This document shows positions 1,270 through 38,245 of a stretch of 64,000 nt of DNA, piece after piece; the first letter of the stretch is position 1; every line of letters begins with the position of its first letter. A program made the position numbers and the translations under genes. Source of the stretch: Perkinsela sp. CCAP 1560/9 (taxonomy: Eukaryota > Protista > Euglenozoa: Kinetoplastea); contig CBFFSA010000001.1 of the NCBI GenBank assembly GCA_965644495.1, positions 1,612,001 to 1,676,000 on the forward strand, written 5' to 3'. Below the pieces are notes generated by a model. The model was not told the origin of the DNA. It did no database searches and worked only from the letters and a program-made list of their open reading frames with translations.

Positions 1270-2050
1270 CAGTTGTGAATAAACGACCGCGCCATTCAAC
1301 TCCTGTAGTATTGATTGAAATTCTGATTTTACGGCCTGACGGGGACGTTCACTTGCGTCTGCAAGTGCTGACAAAAGCGCCTGCGTGTCTGAATGCATAG
1401 AACCTCCTGACAGAATTGGTATGCAACGAAAGGCCTCTTCATTTATTTTTCCGCTTTTGACGTAGGTGTCGTTCTTCCGCTTGATTGCCTCACGAAAAAG
1501 TTGGGGGCATTTCGTCGCAAGATTTGATGGTGCAAGCTCATGAATTACCGTCAGGTCGTAGTAAATTTCACCACTTGCCTAGTAAATCACAAGGTCGGGT
1601 CCTGATCGGCAAAATGATTTTCCTCCGCACGTTTTTTCGTGTGTACGCTTGTGGCTCGGGTCCACTGTTTCACCACATTGCGTGCAGCGGAGAGTGGAAA
1701 AGGAACGTGGTTCCTTCTCACATGGGATACCTGTTTTCGTGCATAATTCGTATAGGTGATTGACGAGTAAGCTGTGTTTTACTGTTGCATTTAGGCCTGC
1801 ACATTTGGAGCATCCAGCAACGTGTCGTATCATGTTGTCGGCATTCAAAAGAGTTTTGCATCCTGGGCACACGGTATGAGACGGAAGGTCGGGGTGCGCA
1901 ATTCCTAATCTCGGCATAATGGCGAGTCGAAACAAATGTGGTGGGATTAGACGTGAGGATTAGACGAAACAAATGTGGTGGGAGAGTACCCATTCATTAT
2001 TACCTTTATTTTCAGTGATTTTTGACATATCCGATGATTCGTTGATGAGC
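1270..2050 (-). mobile_element. CRE/SLACS-like non-LTR retroposon, C-terminal Zn-finger/RLE fragment
   Basis: RLGIAH..CPGC..HVAGC..KH..CEKEPR..GPDLVIY: CCHC motif plus PD-(D/E)xK start. Frame disrupted. Confidence 0.7.
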
Positions 2051-2059
2051 CTGTTCCAA

Positions 2060-5000
2060 GGACAATGCCTGTTCCAAGGCAATGCGACGTGCCCGCGCGC
2101 TACCTGCGTGAACAGGTGCGTAACGGCCCCCCTTTTGATCGAGTGGGTCCCGAAGCCCTGCCCCAAGATTCTCTTTATCTTCCCGTCCATCTCGCGGGCT
2201 GTTGTGCTCGTTAGTTTTTGTCCCAGCCTCAGCTGTTGCACATGTTGGGCGATCTCCGGTGTTCGTGCGCCCTGAATCGTGGTACACATTGATAGTCGGT
2301 AAGGGTTTAGACGTGTCGCTTTCGTGTTTCGACCCCAGTAAACGATGACCTCGCCGACGTATTTTTACGAACCTTTCCATTGTGAGCTCGGCGACTTCTG
2401 TCCATCGAGCCGCTGCCTTCCAGCATATCAAGACGGCTATTGAGTCGCTTGTCGATAGCTTTTGCCTGAGGTTGTTGAGTAGCCGTGGTGTAAGGGGCTG
2501 CATTTGTCTTGTTGGTTCCAGGGCTCCTCTTGCTTGCAAGGCTTTTGCGTAGAGTTTGAGGGGAACTGGATCTTGCTGACTTAACTGAAAGATTTGCAGA
2601 CTTCTGGCGTAACTCAGGGTCGTAGATGGTGCGAGTCCGACTTGATTTAGGAATAAAACTGCTTGTACGGGATCGATTCGGGCCCCAGTTCGAGAGCAGA
2701 ACTGGTCGAGTCGGTTCCACAGGCGCGATCGGGTGTTCCATGTCGCGTTTGTCCACATGGGGCTTATGGCCTGCTGGAGTGGAGCCGCAAACGGGGACGT
2801 CGGATGTATCCTTACGATTGTACATGCCAACTCTTGTTGGTTGGTTGTAGTGCGGTTTTCGCGTTCGGTAAGGTTGGCGCGTGGTTTCTTTAGTGGACAT
2901 AGGTTTGGGCCCTGTCGTTTGGTCGAGAGTTGCTTTGGACGAGGCACCGCTGCAGCTCTCTTGCGGGTTGAGTTTATCGTGGCAACACGGAAAGATGGAA
3001 TACAACGCTGCAACAAAACCCTCGATACACCTGGAGATATGACCCGCCGCTTCTTCAGCGGCTGGGCACGAGCGATATGAGGGGGGGCATTCCCTAGAAG
3101 CCCCTCTTTGCACCAGCAGTGCCGCTCATCACTCCTCCACGAAAACCCGGAGCCGTGCGAGTAGAGGCTTGCTGATTCAGCGGGCAATTAGCACGAAAGT
3201 GCCCCGGCTTGTGACAACGGTAGCACAGCAGCCCCTGGCGACTCGTCGTCGACTTTGAAACCGTCATGATGCGTAATTTCTCTTCTGCCACCGCCTTGGA
3301 ATACGCATCCATGGAGTCATCATTTTTATGAAGCTTCAGTTGGACACGCTCAACTGGAATTCCTACGGCGCTCCAGTAGTTATTCCGCAACTCTTCGATA
3401 GCAGTCCGAACTACTTCGATGAAATGCTCTTCCCGCCAATACGGCACTACTCGCGCAGCCTGGACCCACTCCTGTACAATCTTGAAGAGACGTTCACGGA
3501 TCGGGGTCGAGTTCAAGAGTAATCCGAATTCCGGGGCAGCTCGCAGATCACGAATTAGGTCTCGCACACGCAACTAATCGGCTAATTCTAACCAGGGAAA
3601 TCAACGTCGAGATTCACATTAGATAAAGAATAATAAACCCAAACAATATCCTAAAACACAATCTTTCGTAATGATTTTCCCTTTTATACAGTGGTTTCAG
3701 TTGATCTTGCCCCCCCCTCGGAATTTTGATTTTTTTTATCCATTTTTGCTCATCTTTGCAGCATTGGAGAGATCTCGTTCCCCTAGCGAAGAGCTTTGCC
3801 GCCTTTTTTTCATAGAGACCCCAGGGTACTCCCTGGGTGACCCGAAAGTTGACCAAAATAAAAAATGACATTTTTTTACCATATCAAAAATGGAGCAAAA
3901 AACGGATTTTATGTCCAAAAGTTAACTCTGAAGGAAAAGAACTAGTGTCCGGAATGGCCTCCATTGTTTTGCAACACTTTTTGAAGTCTATTAGGGACTG
4001 AATCAATTGTGTTGCACACTTTACGTTTTTCTTAAGGACGTTTTAGAATCTGAAAAGCTTTTTTAATGGCATCGGCGAGGGTAGCATGATTGTGGGGCTT
4101 AATTTTTTTCTTTATGATACCGTTCATTTGTTTCCAAACATTTTCTATTGGATTTAAATCAGGCGAATTCGCTGGCCAAGACAATTGTTTAATACGATAT
4201 TTTATCAATTCACCTTTTGCCAAGTTATGGGTGGTAGCATTATCCATTTGCACAGTCACATTGTCGACGTGGTCTGTGAGATAATATAAAAACCCATTAG
4301 GCTTCTGAAAGGAGTCAAGGATCACTCCCCCAGTGACCTTGTGCGCATTTTCGTAAGTTGTATTGTCATTGGGTTCAAACACGTGCAAGAAAAATCCGTG
4401 TTCTACACTAATACCCATCCAAGCCATTACCCCCTTCCCCCCATACCACCTACGGTTTCTGCAGCGAAGTTTTCTTTGGCACCCTTTAGGTCCAATGAAA
4501 AACTGAGACCCATGAACCCCACAGGTAAACAATTTTTCATCGATCCAAATGATTTTGTTTAAATCTTCTTTAGGCCATGTAAGCAATTCCTTTGCTAATC
4601 TCAAACGCTGCGACTTGTGTTCCTCAGTTAGGTCACAGTTCGGCGACTTAGCCCATCTACCGTAATCAATATTTTTCAAAATAGTTCTTATTTTGTTTAA
4701 CGAACATTTATACCCCATATTCAGCACTTGCTCGTGTATCCAAGTATAAGTTAAGCAACCATCGTACGTTTCGTTTTCATCATCCATTTTTGTTTGCACC
4801 TCCGTAATGCTCAACTCAAAGTAGTTGATTTTCGGGTGCGGTAATGGATACTTCGTTGTCCGATCATCATCCCACACTGCACAGAGAACGTCAGAGGTAC
4901 GATCGTCTGGAAACCGGAACGACACGCTCCCCACTACCTGATACGTTTCGATTTCATCCCGTTCCCCCCACTTCGCTGTAACCCGCACCTTGTGCCCTTT

Positions 5001-5230
5001 GCGCAACAGAATGCGAATCTTTTTCTCAAACTGGTCCAAATCTTCCTTGGGCATGATCTCATCACCCTCACCGCTCCGAAGCAAGGCTGCAATCTGGTCA
5101 GGATCGAGCGTATGTCTTCGCGCACTAAGTGTCGCCAGGTTGTCGGGTCGTGATGACGGTGATATAGAACGGCGTACGGCGTCGACAATATTTGGCATAA
5201 AATATAAAACTTGTGGTATCGTGTAGGTTG
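2060..5230 (-). mobile_element. VIPER-like YR retroelement copy 1 (gag + tyrosine recombinase), interrupted by Tc1
   Basis: Gag with zinc knuckle CYRCHKPGHFRANC (3094-3573; N-terminus 4800-5198). YR motifs WKAAARWTEV and FGTHSIKRGA. Homologous to 14460-16790. Confidence 0.8.
3689..4800 (-). mobile_element. Tc1/mariner (DD34E-type) transposon, 5'-truncated
   Basis: IWIDEK / QMDNATTH / PANSPDLNPIENVW. Terminus TA|CAGTGGTTTCAGTTG at 3689; the same end recurs inverted at ~61716-61850. Confidence 0.85.
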
Positions 5231-5344: not shown

Positions 5345-6521
5345 ATTTCGTATCGTAAACTTCTATTACTCTGGACGCTTTTTTGACGCAGCCGTCTAAA
5401 ACAAGACTTGTGGATTTCTTAATTGCGCGATTGTCCTGTTGTACGTTCCGGTTCTCCTCGAAGTCTTGCGACTGAGAGGGCGTTAAGGGGCGTCGTCGGC
5501 GACGTTTAGCACTGACTTTCCGTATCGTCGCAAGTGAATGTTTCATCGTTGACAGAATTTTGCTCCAAATCTTGTTACGTTGCGGGTACAGGCTTTCGGC
5601 GTAATCGCGGAGTATATCCCGGTAAATGGCAACAACGCAGGGAACGAATTGCGGAGAGATTGAACGTAGCGTCGGCATAGGTTCAAGGTCGAGATCAGCT
5701 TCGGTATGATATGTGGGACCCATTTTCATATTGGGGGTGCTGGATCTCTTCTCGCGTAGGTTCTCATTTGCTTTCGTGTCCCATGTTATCTTGAAAATTC
5801 GTACGTTCACGTGTGGTGGAATGTGGCCTGTAAAAATTTTTCCTACCTGGTGGCCTTGAATTCCTTCGTATTCGATTCTGAATTTTCGTTTATGTGCTCG
5901 TCGCTGCACGCTTCGCACCGTTCCGCGTGACACATTCAAGTTGGATGTGCAATCGAAACTCCATGCTATTGTGAATTTGTCTCCAGGTTTTGCATCTTGT
6001 GAAATTTCGCACACTTCATCCGGTGGAATCGGAAACTGGATCGCTGGGTTAATCGCTAACAGCTCGTCGTCAATGGTTGGTGAAGGTTCGTCAATTGTTG
6101 GGTATTGCGCTACCTCATCATAGTTACACTGAGCTTCATCTATTGGCGATTCGCAATCTAGAAACTCGCAGGCAATGGGGTCCGGTGATGATATCGCAGT
6201 CTCTCCTGGACAATTCTCCGGTGTATTCTGGGGTGATATGGAGTGAGTCGCACTTTTGCCTATATTTAACGTGATCGGATCGCCTTGAAGTGGATTTACT
6301 GCAAATATGTCAAAGGCGTGCACGTCGTGGACATATCCTTCGCCATTGAAAGAGCATCCTTTTGAGGGTATTGGTATGTATGTGGCATTGTTTTGTTGAT
6401 GAGAGTTTTCGGTGTTAAAAATTGCTCCTGACATGGCATTTGTTGCCGCTGTGAGTGCCGATGCCGCGACTGCGCACGTTTTCAGTAAGAGTAAAAATAG
6501 AAACAACAAATGAAACAACAA
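5345..6521 (-). mobile_element. CRE-like retroposon N-terminal ORF fragment
   Basis: EPMPTLRSI...RAIKKSTSLVLDGCVKKASRV resembles the pre-RT region of CRE-type elements. Shares a ~120-aa domain with 6922-8300. Confidence 0.5.
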
Positions 6522-12340: not shown

Positions 12341-12420
12341 TGTGGTAATTGGGTAATTGAAATGTGGTAATTACCACCTATTACCACACATGTGGTAAAT
12401 TACCACATTACCACATCCAG
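12341..12420. repeat. GTGGTAA/TTACCAC direct and inverted repeat cluster (probable transposon subterminus)
   Basis: About eight copies in both orientations within 80 bp. Confidence 0.6.
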
Positions 12421-12429
12421 GGTGTGTCA

Positions 12430-12717
12430 CAAATTGTGACTGCCTTAGCTTCCGCGTGGTTTATCTCATACTTGAATTCAGGGGGCCATGAGTCACCGGT
12501 TATTTGAACCTGGCCGTCATCAAGGTATAACACAGCACCCCATCCCTTACTCGAGGCGTCCGTATACAAGCGGTGCTTATGCGGCACCACATCAGGATGT
12601 GGTGGAGGGTCAATTGGCACGTTCTTCAATACTTCGCGCCATTCCGCTAAAATGCATCGTGTGGGCTTCGGGAGAGGGACAGACGTATCCGCTAAGTGTA
12701 GGTTCCGATTTAGGACA
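12430..12717 (-). mobile_element. RNase H fragment of a VIPER/DIRS-type element
   Basis: LYTDASSKGWGAV...INHAEAKAV. Confidence 0.8.
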
Positions 12718-14090
12718 TTCAAGTTTCAAGTTTTGCCCAGCGCGTGCCCCTTGCAAAGTTCGCATTGCTGCTTGGAATGCAAGGGACACTTCTTCCCTAG
12801 GAAAGGTCACTGCAGGGGAGAAAGCCCCTGATGGGTCGTGCCACTGCTAGGAAAGAAATAATCTTCCCTACACAGGACCTTGCGCGTGGTAGGCATTTCG
12901 CCACTCCGCAGCAGCAAGGTGACTCCTCTCGCTGGGAGACGCCCGAGGACGCGACTTCCTCGTTTGCAGGCGTTGTACCTATCCGGCCACCCGCCACAAC
13001 GGCACAGACCCGCACTCCCTCACGTTAACAAAACTGTCCTCGGAGTGACACCTACCCTAGTTATCTGGTATCTTGTTACATGTATATATTAATACTGTTG
13101 CGGTGGTTGTAAAACTACCGCTCTACACTCGATTATTGAAAAAAAAGTGAACAAAAACAGTGAAAATATAAAGAGGAACACAGTAATATAATAGAAGAAA
13201 AAAATATAAAAGGGGGCTCCGGTGGTCCAAAACTGAAAAAATTTTTTGAAAAAAATGGGGGGTCCATGGGGGGGGGGCCAGGGGGGGGGGTCCAGGGGGG
13301 GGGTCCAGGGGGGGGGTCCAGGGGGGGGGGGGGCATGGTCGATCAAATTTTTTCGAAAAAATTAGTTTTCGAAAAAAAAACGCAGAAAGGGTAGCCGGGG
13401 TCTTGGCGCGCATTTTCCACCCCCCTACCCGGGGGTGACCCCCCCGCGTATCCGCAGGACGGGTCCGCCAAGTTCGGATTTTTTCGGAAAAAAAATTTTG
13501 AAAAAAATTTCAACTTGGCGAAAAAAATGACAAAAAAAATATTTTTCCAAAATCGTTTCCCCTATTGTATTTTGATAGTTTGGGACCTACACTAGCTTTC
13601 TACGCAGTTGTTTTCGCAAGGTATCACTTCTTCTAACTGTGGTGCGCCCCCCAAAATGACCCATTTTTGACTAAAAAAGGTGAAAAAGTATTTTTCGGAC
13701 CTAAAAGGGCATTTTTGTGTCGAAAGAATGGTATGGTTGGAGTCGCATTCTCTACCCAATACGTTCGGTAGGCTTCCATTCATGCCTGCGAGTGATTTCC
13801 CACGCGCAAATGTCGGATTTAGTGTTCTGAGAGCAAAAATATGCGAAAATGACCCCATTTGTACCCGAAATTCGGCTATTTTTGGCTATAATCTTTCCGT
13901 TTTCCAGGCTAAATTTTCTTTTTTAGGCTCTTCGTTAAACGCGGCGGTAGTTTTCAACGCGAAGCGCGCAGCATGAGTGACTTCTAAGTTGAAAGCAACC
14001 ACCGCGTTTAACGAAGAGCCTAAAAAAGAAATATATATAGTTACTGTATATTAATACTGTTTATTAGATACCGGGCGGTGTCACCCATTC
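12718..14090 (-). mobile_element. Structured SINE-like element D, interrupted at 13075-14061
   Basis: CAGGGG-CTTTCT-CCCCTG hairpin, (AACTTGA)2 tail at 12718-12734, and a split copy of the 40-nt repeat seen at 18261-18427. Confidence 0.6.
13075..14061. mobile_element. ~1-kb non-coding insertion with terminal direct repeats, G-run array and long hairpin
   Basis: TATATTAATACTGTT at 13085-13099 and 14047-14061; ~44-bp-arm inverted repeat at 13915-14031; (G7-10 TCCA)n at 13257-13333. Confidence 0.6.
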
Positions 14091-14459
14091 CGGCGAAAAC
14101 GGGGCGCGGCAGAGAGCGAAAGGGCGGCGGAGAGCGCAGCGAAGAGCGCAGCGCAGCGATAGCGATAGCGAAGTGGGGGTGAAGGGTAGGGCGAAGAGGG
14201 CTACTCGGGGGGGGGGGCGAAGGGGAAGACTGCCAGGAGGGCAGTGCTGGGGGTGAAAGGGGGTGCAGCGAAGAGGGGGGAGCGAGGAGGCGAAGGGGGC
14301 GAAAATGTTGGTGCAGAAGGTGGGCAAGGAGGGCGGAGAATTGGGCGGCGAGGAGGGCAGCCAGATGGGCGGCCAGGAGGGCGCGCGTGAGCGGTTCTTC
14401 TCCAAGGAGTGGTGAAAGGGGTCATTGGGAGGGGTCAAAATTAAAAAAAAGAAGGGTCA

Positions 14460-16790
14460 ACAAGGTACGAATTTATCACAGGGATAGACTTTTTCACATG
14501 TAAAGGCAAACTCATATCTTTTGACTTCGCTAGCCTCGAGCTACGTCGTGCACTAACAATGGAATGTCTACGGAGATAGGGTACTTCTTTGAAGCACTGC
14601 GCCACGTGTGATGATGTTAAAGAACCGGCAGGAGCGCTGATACTCGCTGTGTTCCGAGGGCTCGAGCTGTTGTAATGCTGCTCGCATTGTAGCGGAGCAG
14701 TGACTCGATGTTTTGATGTTTCGTGAGATTTTGTACCTCCTCCATACGAAGGTTTCCGCGTGCGATCTCGTGGAAAAGGTGGGTGATGACGCCCCTCTTT
14801 ATCGAGTGTGTCCCGTACCCTTGACCTAGAACGTACCCTTGACCTAGAATGGAATGAATTCGATGATCCATCTCGCGGACTGTCGTATGGCAGAACCTTT
14901 GTCCGTTGGTCATGGCCTGCACGTGTTGTGCGAGTTGCGGTGTCCCTGGGTCGGTTACTATGGCGGAAAGATACGGTCGAAAAGGATTTAGGCGTGTTGT
15001 CTTGGTGCCTCTTCCCCAATAAATTATTATCTCTTGTGTGCTTACACTCACGAATTGTTTCCTTCGTAGATCCGCAGTCTCGGTCCTTCGCCCCGCCACC
15101 TTCCAGCACAAGAGGCAACACATGCTCTCTTTGTGACTCAGTTGGCTTCTTAACTTTTCCAGCAGTATGGGAGTAATCGGTTCCATTTGACGCGTTGGCT
15201 CCAGTCCCCCCTGCGCTTGCAGGGCCTTTATATAGCTTTAACGGGGTTACCTCTTCCCCCATTAGCTGATACAAAGTTTTCAACCCCCTGCATAACCCAT
15301 GCGTGTCGAAGTCGCTAGAGGGAGAATCTCTAGAAAAGGAATTGCGTTTGTGGGTGTCGCCGACACGCCCTTCGCCGCGCAGTATTGCTGCATACGTAGC
15401 CATATTCGTTCCCGTGTGGTCCATGTGGCCGTGGCCCACATTGGTTCGAAAGCTTCGTTTAGTTGTAGCGTTCGTGGGTCGTTGGGGTGGAGGCGGAGGA
15501 TGGCGCTGAGAATGGCGTCCCGACTTTCGGTTGGTTTTGCTGTAGCGCGTGCGTCTGTGGCGGGCGGTCTTCTGGGCTGGTGGTCTGGAAAGGAGGTGGG
15601 AAGAGTCACGTGGGGGAGAAGATCGACTGGAGGAGGAGGGCGAAGGCACCGCAGCGGAGGATTTATTTTGAACGTTTGCTGTTTTGGGGCCGGAACGGTA
15701 GGAGCCCTTTGCCGCCTGAGGCAAAGAGCACGAGTAGTAGGGGTGGGGGGCATTCCCTAGTGGGAACCCCGTGTTACGCCGGTATAACGAACGGCGCCGC
15801 CCGCCACCCCTCCGCGAAAATCCTGATTCGCAGATGGGGTGGAGCGGAAATGGGTTTGGGTAGCATGGCCCATGTTTAGGCAGTCCGCTCGAATATGTCC
15901 CAGTTGGCGACATGAGAAACAGAATGGGCGACGATGGAAAGAACGAACTTGAGTACGAGCTCGGAGCTGCTCGTCCACCACCAGCTGGCCATAACGACCC
16001 TTGGGATCAACGTCACGATGTAGTCGCTGTTGAACTCTCTCAACGGCCACACCCGCAGCAGCCCAATAATGGTTCCGGAGCTCCTCAATTATGAGCTCAG
16101 CTATTGCGAGGTTATGCTTCTCCATCCAATCCTCCGTGTGACGTGCGGCGTAAATCCATTCAATGAGAACCGTGAAAAGACGTTCACGCTGCGGAGGAGG
16201 GTTGAAACGGACTCCAAGCAGCGGCGCCTCACGCAGCTCACGGATAAGTTCCCGAGGTTTGAACATATCATCCGTGTAAATCCACGGTTGCCACGTAACG
16301 GGGTCGTAGGCGGAGAAGCTTTTGGGGTCCGTGATTCGGATACGCTCGAAGGAGGGGAGTAAAGTTTCTGCTGGCTGGTCACCTGGCATATTAGCTCGAA
16401 CGCGGACCACAGTCAAGCTATGATATACGATGTCAGGAAGAGGGAAACGATAGTACGTGTTTACATCCCCATCCCATTCTGCGACCAGTTCCACGGAGGA
16501 TGAATCGTTCGGATACTTTAGGTGCATGTCCCCTACGACCGCCTGTCGTATGTTGTCGCCGGGTCGGGACCACACCGCCTCAACTTTAACTTCATAGTCC
16601 TTGCGCAAAAGTCCAACGACCTTGCTTATAAATTCTTCTTTCGCCGTATTCGTTAAAATACCATGGGCATTTTGATCTGAGCGCATAGCACGGCTTACAT
16701 TATCAAGGTCAAGATTGTCGTAACGCTGGGGCGAGCGGGAAGGCTCAACTTGGTCAGGGTTGAGCGTTCCTTGTCGCCGTGGGGGGGCAT
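14460..16790 (-). mobile_element. VIPER-like YR retroelement copy 2 (gag, YR, start of RT)
   Basis: Gag 15757-16686 with CFSCRQLGHIRADC. YR with YGTHSIKRG and TKH..LLRY. RT start MSLPLHVK. Confidence 0.85.
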
Positions 16791-37363: not shown

Positions 37364-38245
37364 TTAATACGCGGGATGCGCCGGTGGAACGAACGGCTCG
37401 TATTCTTTTAGGAAGATATTATCCGCCCTATTCCATGCGATGAAGCGACGCCGCTCCGTCGTTCTATCATTTGTTCGTTCTACTACGGAGAATGGAATTA
37501 CCTCCTGCATTGTCGGACGCTTATCCAACTCTTTACCATTTACACGGTTAATAACGCCTTGATCCAGTAGTAATCTAACGTCAGAACTCGGTAAATCTCC
37601 TTGCAAATTTTAGATCTCGATAGTTGTTGCGGTAGGCTTGTTAACATACGCCATACTTCGTCGAAACCATGTAGAGTCGATTGATCCAGGAACGAACTTT
37701 TTCTTGATCGATACGAGGAATATCCGGTTTAATGTGTAACGGTATATTTATGTCTTCCGAACCAGCCAACCTTGAAGCGCGTCTGGGACGTACAATAGTG
37801 TGTCGTCTTTTCAATGGATAATCTTCCAGGTACGAGTTAAAATCCTTTTGAGTAATTATATTGGTATGTGTTTCATCGCATTTTGTGTCCCCAAAAGCCA
37901 ACGCAGTTGTGACCGGATTCTCGTTGTAGCGGAAGAGTGACTCTGCCTCCTGGTGTTTGGCTAGCCGTTGTACGTCGTCCAAGGTCAAATGTCCCCTCGC
38001 CACCTCCTCGAATAGAAGAGTTATCGCTCCCCACTTCATGGAGTGCGTTCTGTACCCTTCCCCGAGAGTCGAACGTATTAAGGCGTCCATCTGGCGGACC
38101 GTTGTCCTGCACAGAGGAAAACCCTTCCTCATGATCTTCACGTGATTTCGCGATCTCCGCCGTTCCTTCTCCCTCCAACACCGCGTACATTAACGCCCGA
38201 TATGGATTTAGTCGGGTCGTTTTTGTATTTCTACCCCACCAAATA
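37364..38245 (-). mobile_element. VIPER-like copy 3 fragment (YR C-terminus, RT N-terminus)
   Basis: THSMKWGA, AKH..FRY, NIPLHIK, PFSVVE..RRRFIAW. Confidence 0.8.

Follow-up and report, generated by a model that had tools for sequence, protein, structure and literature searches.

The stretch analysed here, 64,000 nucleotides of contig CBFFSA010000001.1 of Perkinsela sp. CCAP 1560/9 (positions 1,612,001 to 1,676,000) and referred to below as the window, carries on its minus strand two diverged and decayed copies—copy 1 and copy 2—of one retroelement family, the gag end of which bears a putative signal for programmed −1 ribosomal frameshifting. All the window features described below are located on that strand. 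In copy 2, the gag open reading frame (ORF; 15757–16686; 309 aa with a CCHC zinc knuckle) ends with a TAG at 15759–15757 and contains, in gag phase, the slippery heptamer G_GAT_TTT (15817–15823), the gag-frame codons around it being CAG GAT TTT CGC GGA GGG GTG (QDFRGG) and the TAG lying 63 nt further on. A 6-nt spacer, CGCGGA (15811–15816), separates the heptamer from the closing stem of a predicted three-way-junction RNA (15740–15810), which encloses the gag stop. The sequence just past gag reads TAG GGA ATG CCC CCC ACC CC, and a tyrosine recombinase gene (14617–15753) follows in the gag frame, directly after TAG GGA ATG. This gene is overprinted by an ORF in the −1 frame (ORF3; 14441–15913; 490 aa, with the frame open from about 16006) that extends to the conserved start of the reverse transcriptase (RT) region (EVPYLRRHS…LPLHVKKSIPVI) and then ends where the element is interrupted. 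The recombinase gene is broken by compensating frame changes and stops around 15186–15280, the RT is lost and a remnant of the RNase H (12408–12722) is found past an inserted or degenerate stretch; the cassette of heptamer, spacer and junction (15740–15823) is intact.

Copy 1, a decayed element of the D/E lineages introduced below, has the heptamer G_GGT_TTT at 3142–3148, likewise in gag phase (PGFRGG). Its RNA element (3081–3135) is decayed, the 5' arm being GGAGTGA (3135–3129), the TAG lying at 3096–3094 and the 3' arm consisting of a run of seven C (3087–3081), so that GGAGTG replaces GGGGTG and 4 nt are deleted from the CCACCCC arm. The end of gag and remnants of the recombinase gene (2080–3573) have scrambled frames, and the −1-frame ORF spans 2012–3187. 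Two occurrences of the 19-nt motif GGNTTTTCGNNNNGGNGTG are present in the window, with 0.00 expected from shuffles. An earlier reading of the bare letters—here the sequence-only reading—had pointed to both heptamers, and their coordinates, gag phase and codon contexts proved to be correct; it has to be amended in that the recombinase shares the gag frame behind one stop and that both copies in the window are decayed. A third fragment of the same family, at 37370–38244, comprises the C-terminus of the recombinase and the N-terminus of the RT, with no gag end.

Layout of the element family

The genome (21 Mb, 110 contigs) contains at least 128 gag matches belonging to several lineages, and 30 loci of 3.9 kb and 20 of up to 8 kb were read, individual loci and contigs being cited below by number. 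The lineages compared are A, B, C, C', D and E from the genome, with gag 78–42% identical to that of copy 2, as well as G and H from contigs of the sample ERZ24900291; the more divergent gag families of the genome (34–41% identity) lie outside this comparison. The layout common to all eight lineages consists of gag, one stop, the recombinase gene in the gag frame and ORF3 in the −1 frame. The gag gene covers approximately 285–310 codons (more in lineages G and H) and ends with TAG, or TGA in lineage H. The recombinase, of 360–395 codons, begins at the codon right after that stop, and ORF3, of 920–1040 codons, opens 70–250 nt upstream of it and carries RT and RNase H (RT/RH) in its second half.

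The gene order—gag with its CCHC knuckle, tyrosine recombinase, RT/RNase H—was taken from ORF maps. The ORF3 domains give weak Pfam matches to RVT_1 and RT_RNaseH and have strong homologues. Since the recombinase yielded no Pfam match, its identity was taken from the comparison of folds: an AlphaFold model based on 11 homologues (pLDDT 73, core above 90) matches the Cre recombinase (Foldseek E 1.4e-8, TM 0.62), and the R, K, HxxR, H and RY positions are invariant. Judged from this model, the second ORF is a tyrosine recombinase. The genes are flanked by split direct repeats in the order A1…B1-A2-B2, located in L038 at 365–467 (A1), 5393–5609 (B1), 5610–5712 (A2) and 5812–6028 (B2), with the same pattern present in L031; by its sequence, the arrangement is thus of the VIPER/TATE type. 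In L038, which belongs to lineage B, an A-rich imperfect repeat with units of 8–13 nt (4833–4970) lies directly after the ORF3 stop and before the split direct repeats. Circular or concatemeric intermediates are thought to be used by such elements. In L056 (1660–9779; ENA ERZ24900291 contig ctg3424c, 14,954 nt, flagged as circular by its name), whole elements follow each other head to tail with a period of 4,524 nt, which could be a tandem array or a circular form.

The gag end: heptamer, fold and open −1 frame

When the copies are aligned, the heptamer is found at the homologous place and in gag phase in every one of the eight and more lineages examined. It takes the form G_GAU_UUU in lineages A, B, G and H, G_GUU_UUU in C and C', G_GGU_UUU in D and E, and G_GUU_UUC in G'. 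Its first G occupies the third position of codons that vary (CAG, CCG, ACG, TCG, AAG) and, because these codons differ between lineages, it is held at the nucleotide and not at the protein level; its middle base alters the gag residue (Asp, Val or Gly) with the slippery pattern kept. A census of the genome with GGNTTTTCGNNNNGGGGTG returned 79 sites against one for the reversed control, the middle base being A, T or G, never C, and the 13 different spacers all measuring 6 nt. This spacer is constant across the lineages as well (7 nt only in lineage H), its last four bases varying between them. Two copies with fused frames should be mentioned here. In L041 (1837–1925) one extra nucleotide, inserted 15 nt ahead of the gag stop and at a distance of 45 nt from the heptamer, joins gag and ORF3 into a frame of 1267 codons, and in L040 (1858–1925) a TAG-to-TGG change joins gag and recombinase into one of 933 codons. 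As single mutated copies, with the insertion in L041 being random, they were rejected as a clue to the mechanism.

Directly after the spacer, an invariant GGGGUG(G) pairs with an invariant (C)CACCCC past the gag stop and closes the three-way junction. In copy 2 the closing stem is formed by GGGGTGG (15810–15804) with CCACCCC (15746–15740) and extended by the pairing of 15802–15799 with 15751–15748; the first enclosed hairpin, H2, joins 15797–15792 with 15781–15776 and the other, H3, joins 15767–15762 with 15757–15752, its loop containing the U and the A of the gag stop UAG. Across the lineages, H2 switches from GCGCC/GGCGC to GCAC/GUGC with the pairing kept, whereas the H3 stem, with the gag stop in or beside its loop, differs from lineage to lineage (UUCCC/GGGAA, UUUCC/GGAAA, CACAA/UUGUG, GGGGCC/GGCCCC, ACUU/AAGU). 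The fold has a predicted energy of −17 to −48 kcal/mol and is the minimum-free-energy structure or near to it, being at most 1.2 kcal/mol off in most lineages and 4.7 kcal/mol at the extreme. In an alignment of 13 lineages, 85% of the cells pair against 43–52% with slid partners, seven pairs have changes on both sides against 3.5 in shuffles (0 of 500), and the covariation score reaches 0.174, with 0.076 as the highest value among the slid controls. The closing stem is thus invariant and the enclosed hairpins covary.

The sequence-only reading had drawn a stem around the gag stop in both window copies. The one in copy 2, GGGGTGG/CCACCCC behind a 6-nt spacer, stands and belongs to the minimum-free-energy structure, but that proposed for copy 1, GAGTGATGAG/CTCATATCGCTC, is incidental and non-conserved: its complementarity is real, albeit imperfect, it differs from the conserved stem and the fold energy is no better than that of shuffles (z −0.54). 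Further downstream, approximately 36 nt past the gag stop, a second hairpin can be seen in the window (15700–15725) as well as in L031, L038, L042, L048, L050 and L055; it is preceded by an invariant CUCGUGCC and keeps its pairing while its arms change (CCGUCGUC/GACGACGG versus GUCCGCU/AGCGG), the covariation having been judged by eye. A pseudoknot of the junction loops with an invariant downstream CUCGUG was also considered, and no claim is made for it, the candidate pairings shifting or breaking between lineages when inspected by eye.

Concerning the −1 frame, its openness was evaluated by shuffling synonymous codons within each recombinase gene, with both protein and codon usage kept. Over the recombinase this frame contains 0 stops against 10–12 in the shuffles, and none of 20,000 shuffles reached a stop-free frame in any of nine elements from six lineages (P<5e-5 per lineage), nor did any of 5,000 in L053, L055 and L056; the GC-rich L052 gave a weaker result (P=0.046). 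The +1 frame has 18–25 stops, as expected. The upstream part of gag serves as an internal control, since its −1 frame contains 13–30 stops per lineage before the heptamer and then 0 for 822–968 codons past it. The openness of the −1 frame is under selection. Of the outcomes that the sequence-only reading had named as refuting it, those that can be checked on sequence, loss of the heptamer in other copies and stops in the −1 frame, were both decided in its favour. The sequence-only reading had the frame open in both copies and leading to the RT start in copy 2, which is the case, but the way is not a straight one, the recombinase gene of approximately 375–395 codons being crossed first.

No methionine of ORF3 is positionally conserved across the lineages. 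In lineage B the ORF3 frame is devoid of an ATG between −220 and about +740, and in lineage C' the frame opens just 15 nt before the heptamer and runs for 387 codons without one. From the stop-free frame together with the lack of a conserved start it follows that ribosomes must enter the ORF3 frame from upstream. The overprinted segment of approximately 400 residues shows a pairwise identity of 23–33%, versus 50–70% for the recombinase core and the RT; it is rich in Arg, Ser, Pro and Gly, has a pI of 10.8 and is predicted to be unstructured (mean pLDDT 41.5, from an alignment of just seven sequences). By these sequence properties it resembles a bridge for which the absence of stops is the sole requirement. 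It should be noted that at the other end of the overlap, in L042, L044 and L048 (e.g. L044, 2947–2953), the recombinase stop TGA overlaps an ORF3-frame ATG (ATGA) at the conserved start of the RT region; this ATGA is present in lineages C, C' and D, the position being occupied by Leu, Val or Ile in A, B and E.

Distant relatives and known systems

A search with the RT/RH profile yielded more than 1,100 cluster representatives at E≤1e-30. Many of these relatives are 830–990 aa long with the RT homology starting from residue 300–440, i.e. they possess the same long N-terminal extension. The gag end could be read in seven outside contigs from six other samples, two of which (L053 and L054) are near-identical, and all seven keep gag, one stop, the in-frame recombinase and the −1 ORF3 on top of it. 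The five with a heptamer, whose RT is about 30–35% identical, have it in gag phase ahead of the stop: G_GGA_AAC in L052 (−31 from the gag stop, with a 10-bp G/C stem enclosing the stop), L060 (−22, before a stem enclosing the stop) and L061 (−25, the −1 frame opening exactly at the heptamer and a 12-bp stem enclosing the stop), G_GAU_UUU in L129 (−61, with a multi-branched fold enclosing the stop) and A_AAA_AAU in L130 (−31, with a G-rich/C-rich stem around the stop). Different slippery heptamers at the same place and in the same topology therefore argue for functional conservation of a frameshift site, and against slippage at the RNA level on a run of U. An exact-pattern scan of metagenome contigs for the cassette gave 67 matches, which were judged to be due to chance because none of them combines the GGN prefix, a well-placed stop and a long −1 frame.

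The closest named relatives are hypothetical proteins of Diplonema papillatum. At the locus of this organism the ORF3 homologue is preceded by a microsatellite, so that no gag end can be read: in L059 (2560–3450; JAPJBO010000103.1), a long TAC/ACT microsatellite precedes the annotated hypothetical protein of 961 aa. As the microsatellite leaves all three frames open, the annotated N-terminus of that protein is probably not its real start.

Among known systems, the gag-pol −1 frameshifting of retroviruses such as human immunodeficiency virus 1, Rous sarcoma virus, mouse mammary tumour virus and simian retrovirus 1 (SRV-1) is the obvious parallel. Retroviruses and retrotransposons likewise have a heptamer in gag phase near the gag stop, a 5–9-nt spacer and a stable downstream RNA structure, along with a −1 pol frame that overlaps the gag end and lacks its own start; here, too, a Gag-Pol fusion is likely. 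The gag-pro heptamer of SRV-1/Mason-Pfizer monkey virus, G_GGA_AAC, is that of three of the distant relatives. In contrast to retroviruses, the present element is without a protease or a DDE integrase, its −1 frame crosses a complete, separately functional recombinase gene before reaching the RT, its stimulator would be a three-way junction enclosing the gag stop and its hosts are euglenozoan-like protists.

The heptamer of lineages C and C', G_GUU_UUU, is that of the shift sites of cardioviruses and arteriviruses, which are stimulated by viral proteins bound downstream; there is no hint of a protein trans-activator for the element. G_GAU_UUU is found in red clover necrotic mosaic virus, and G_GGU_UUU in barley yellow dwarf virus. 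These unrelated plant viruses share with the element identical heptamers and a zero-frame stop shortly downstream, but use long-distance pairing to the 3' end as a stimulator, the structure of the element being local. The sequence-only reading had called both window heptamers functional sites of plant RNA viruses; for G_GAU_UUU this is documented in the accessible part of a 2016 review on frameshifting, as the shift site of pea enation mosaic virus 2 (PMC5009743).

The VIPER of Trypanosoma cruzi and the TATE of Leishmania have the same gene order and the same split direct repeats A1…B1-A2-B2 (PMC5146736, PMC6681497, PMC12278014). In the T. cruzi VIPER consensus, ORF1 covers 169–1509, the tyrosine recombinase 1510–2517 and RT/RH 1386–4214 (PMC5146736), i.e. 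the recombinase lies in the gag frame right past the stop and RT/RH at −1 from 124 nt earlier, a comparison made by the published coordinates alone. The element family differs in that its nearest named relatives are the Diplonema papillatum proteins and not the trypanosome ones. According to the papers on VIPER and TATE, the recombinase and RT/RH ORFs overlap and ORF3 has its own start (PMC6681497, PMC5146736, PMC12278014); frameshifting is not mentioned in these three, a remark in the original VIPER paper (Lorenzi 2006) being possible. Reviews of DIRS-like elements report ORF overlaps and name no mechanism (PMC3266345, PMC3783388), the paper on DIRS-1 mobilisation does not mention frameshifting (PMC7192593), and the accessible part of the 2016 review mentions neither DIRS, VIPER nor tyrosine recombinases (PMC5009743). 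In keeping with the sequence-only reading, whose author was not aware of the mechanism being described for these elements, no such paper was found in the searchable literature.

With regard to the neighbourhood of copy 1, an ORF at 4032–5198 contains a DDE_3/Tc1-type transposase domain (Pfam E 1.9e-10), and a gag-like fragment (4785–5036) sits in the 5' part of this ORF. DNA transposons are unusual in kinetoplastid-like genomes.

A probable frameshift and its alternatives

Based on the comparative sequence evidence, which supports the proposal of the sequence-only reading that Gag-RT/RH is produced by −1 frameshifting, the gag end of this VIPER/TATE-like tyrosine-recombinase retrotransposon, whose host is a euglenozoan-like protist, most probably carries (we put the probability at roughly 0.83) a programmed −1 frameshift site of the gag-pol type. 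Most ribosomes would terminate at the gag UAG and yield Gag. A fraction would pause when G_GNU_UUY occupies the P and A sites and the GC-rich closing stem of the three-way junction lies 6 nt ahead, then slip one base back and go on in the −1 frame through approximately 400 codons over the recombinase gene and then through RT/RNase H. The product would consist of Gag, a basic disordered linker and RT/RH, and the frameshift would both determine the Gag:Pol ratio and keep the polymerase attached to Gag, as in retroviruses. Slippage of the ribosome at the heptamer, as well as its rate, is what we infer from the features of the gag end.

Concerning the recombinase, it follows gag in frame behind a single stop, and a Gag-recombinase is therefore probably made by readthrough of that stop, as the sequences suggest. 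The stop context is UAG-G throughout the genome and UGA-CU in five of the seven elements with a UGA stop (lineage H and six outside contigs). The first methionine of the recombinase ORF is residue 34, 81 or 95 in lineages C, D and E and residue 2 in A, B and C'; in the latter three, with the ATG two codons past the stop, reinitiation or independent initiation is possible. Murine leukaemia virus makes its gag-pol by stop-codon readthrough. There a single stop in a leaky context stands between gag and the in-frame gene, as may be the case in the element, whose downstream gene has no nearby AUG in lineages C, D and E; the gag stop of the element, however, lies in a hairpin loop inside the putative frameshift stimulator, no convincing conserved structure is seen at the usual distance of about 8 nt past the stop (the consensus fold being weak, −2.8 kcal/mol), and readthrough is deduced from the arrangement. 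A candidate stimulator of readthrough, in which CCCACCCC would pair anew with a GGGUG located downstream, was set aside, since it is missing in lineages A, G and H. One may go further and propose—tentatively, at somewhat under even odds—that a single RNA cassette gives Gag, Gag-recombinase by readthrough and Gag-linker-RT/RH by the −1 shift, the polymerase frame being threaded through the recombinase gene as a disordered bridge of approximately 400 residues, and that this mode of expression is ancestral to the VIPER/TATE-like clade as a whole, the elements of Trypanosoma cruzi and Leishmania included.

Several points weigh against the frameshift. All the evidence for it is computational. Three of the four heptamer forms are non-canonical, the XXX bases not being identical. 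Many copies are recent, so that copy counts overstate the independent support, the real sample being about eight lineages and five outside relatives. The near-identical L053 and L054 have no heptamer of the A/U type; they possess, instead, an ATG that overlaps with the gag stop. Compared with dinucleotide shuffles, the fold has free-energy z-scores of −2.0 to +1.5, which are weak and not significant because the region is GC-rich, and the covariation is therefore relied on for the fold. The invariant stem, moreover, lies in a region translated in two frames, for which reason a part of its conservation could be at the protein level. Finally, the ORF3-frame ATG that lineages C, C' and D possess at their recombinase stop offers a possible second route to the RT and may represent a lineage-specific reinitiation.

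That same ATG, together with the T. cruzi VIPER annotations, which assign ORF3 its own ATG and mention alternative starts (PMC5146736), and with the gene calls of some relatives, which begin near the RT domain, might be taken to mean that ORF3 is translated alone, from an internal AUG on a separately processed (e.g. trans-spliced) mRNA or by internal initiation, with the heptamer and fold kept for another reason, such as double coding. This is, however, unlikely. No methionine position is conserved, lineages B and C' lack an ATG for hundreds of codons, and independent translation would explain neither the roughly 400 stop-free codons upstream in every lineage nor why the open frame always starts just before an in-phase heptamer. 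Still less probable is termination-reinitiation, with ribosomes that have completed gag or the recombinase starting anew in the −1 frame where a stop and a start of the AUGA type overlap: an ATG overlaps the gag stop in L053/L054 and L061 and the ATGA exists at the recombinase stop of C, C' and D, yet in the lineages of the genome the −1 frame has no ATG at the gag stop or close to it, the recombinase stop of A, B and E is likewise free of one, and reinitiation at the recombinase stop would need no open overprinted frame at all.

The frame change could in principle occur in the RNA, by slippage of the polymerase on the run of 4–5 U that the site contains. Such runs are short for transcriptional slippage, and three distant relatives carry G_GGA_AAC, which has no U run; the fixed 6-nt spacer with a downstream structure is a hallmark of ribosomal −1 slippage, and since new copies would inherit changes in the U run, it is telling that the sole frame-fusing indel seen, that of L041, lies 45 nt away from the heptamer. 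We regard this explanation as very improbable, and give equally little credence to the motif and fold being relics with no present role, owed to chance or to a packaging or dimerisation signal unrelated to recoding. The many near-identical recent insertions would suit relics, but not a signal conserved across lineages whose flanking codons have diverged freely, with compensatory changes, 79 sites against one control and different slippery heptamers at the same place in distant relatives.

The kind of mechanism considered here, programmed −1 frameshifting, is well known; what would be new is that it occurs in tyrosine-recombinase retroelements, that the pol frame is threaded through a whole gene and that readthrough probably accompanies it. 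Every VIPER/TATE diagram since 2006 has shown the recombinase and RT/RH ORFs as overlapping with no reason given, and the frameshift would explain this overlap, because a shift from gag to pol needs the pol frame to be open from the gag end. If true, this would be the first recoding signal known for tyrosine-recombinase (DIRS-order) retroelements, as far as the literature search shows, and a clear case of −1 frameshifting in euglenozoan nuclear elements. It would offer a testable account of the Gag:Pol stoichiometry in elements that lack a protease, together with a natural case of dual coding sustained over approximately 1.2 kb, one of the two frames being apparently just a bridge. For the annotation of these elements it would mean that ORF3 should not be called from its first ATG, and it makes a prediction for the elements of the medically important trypanosomatids.

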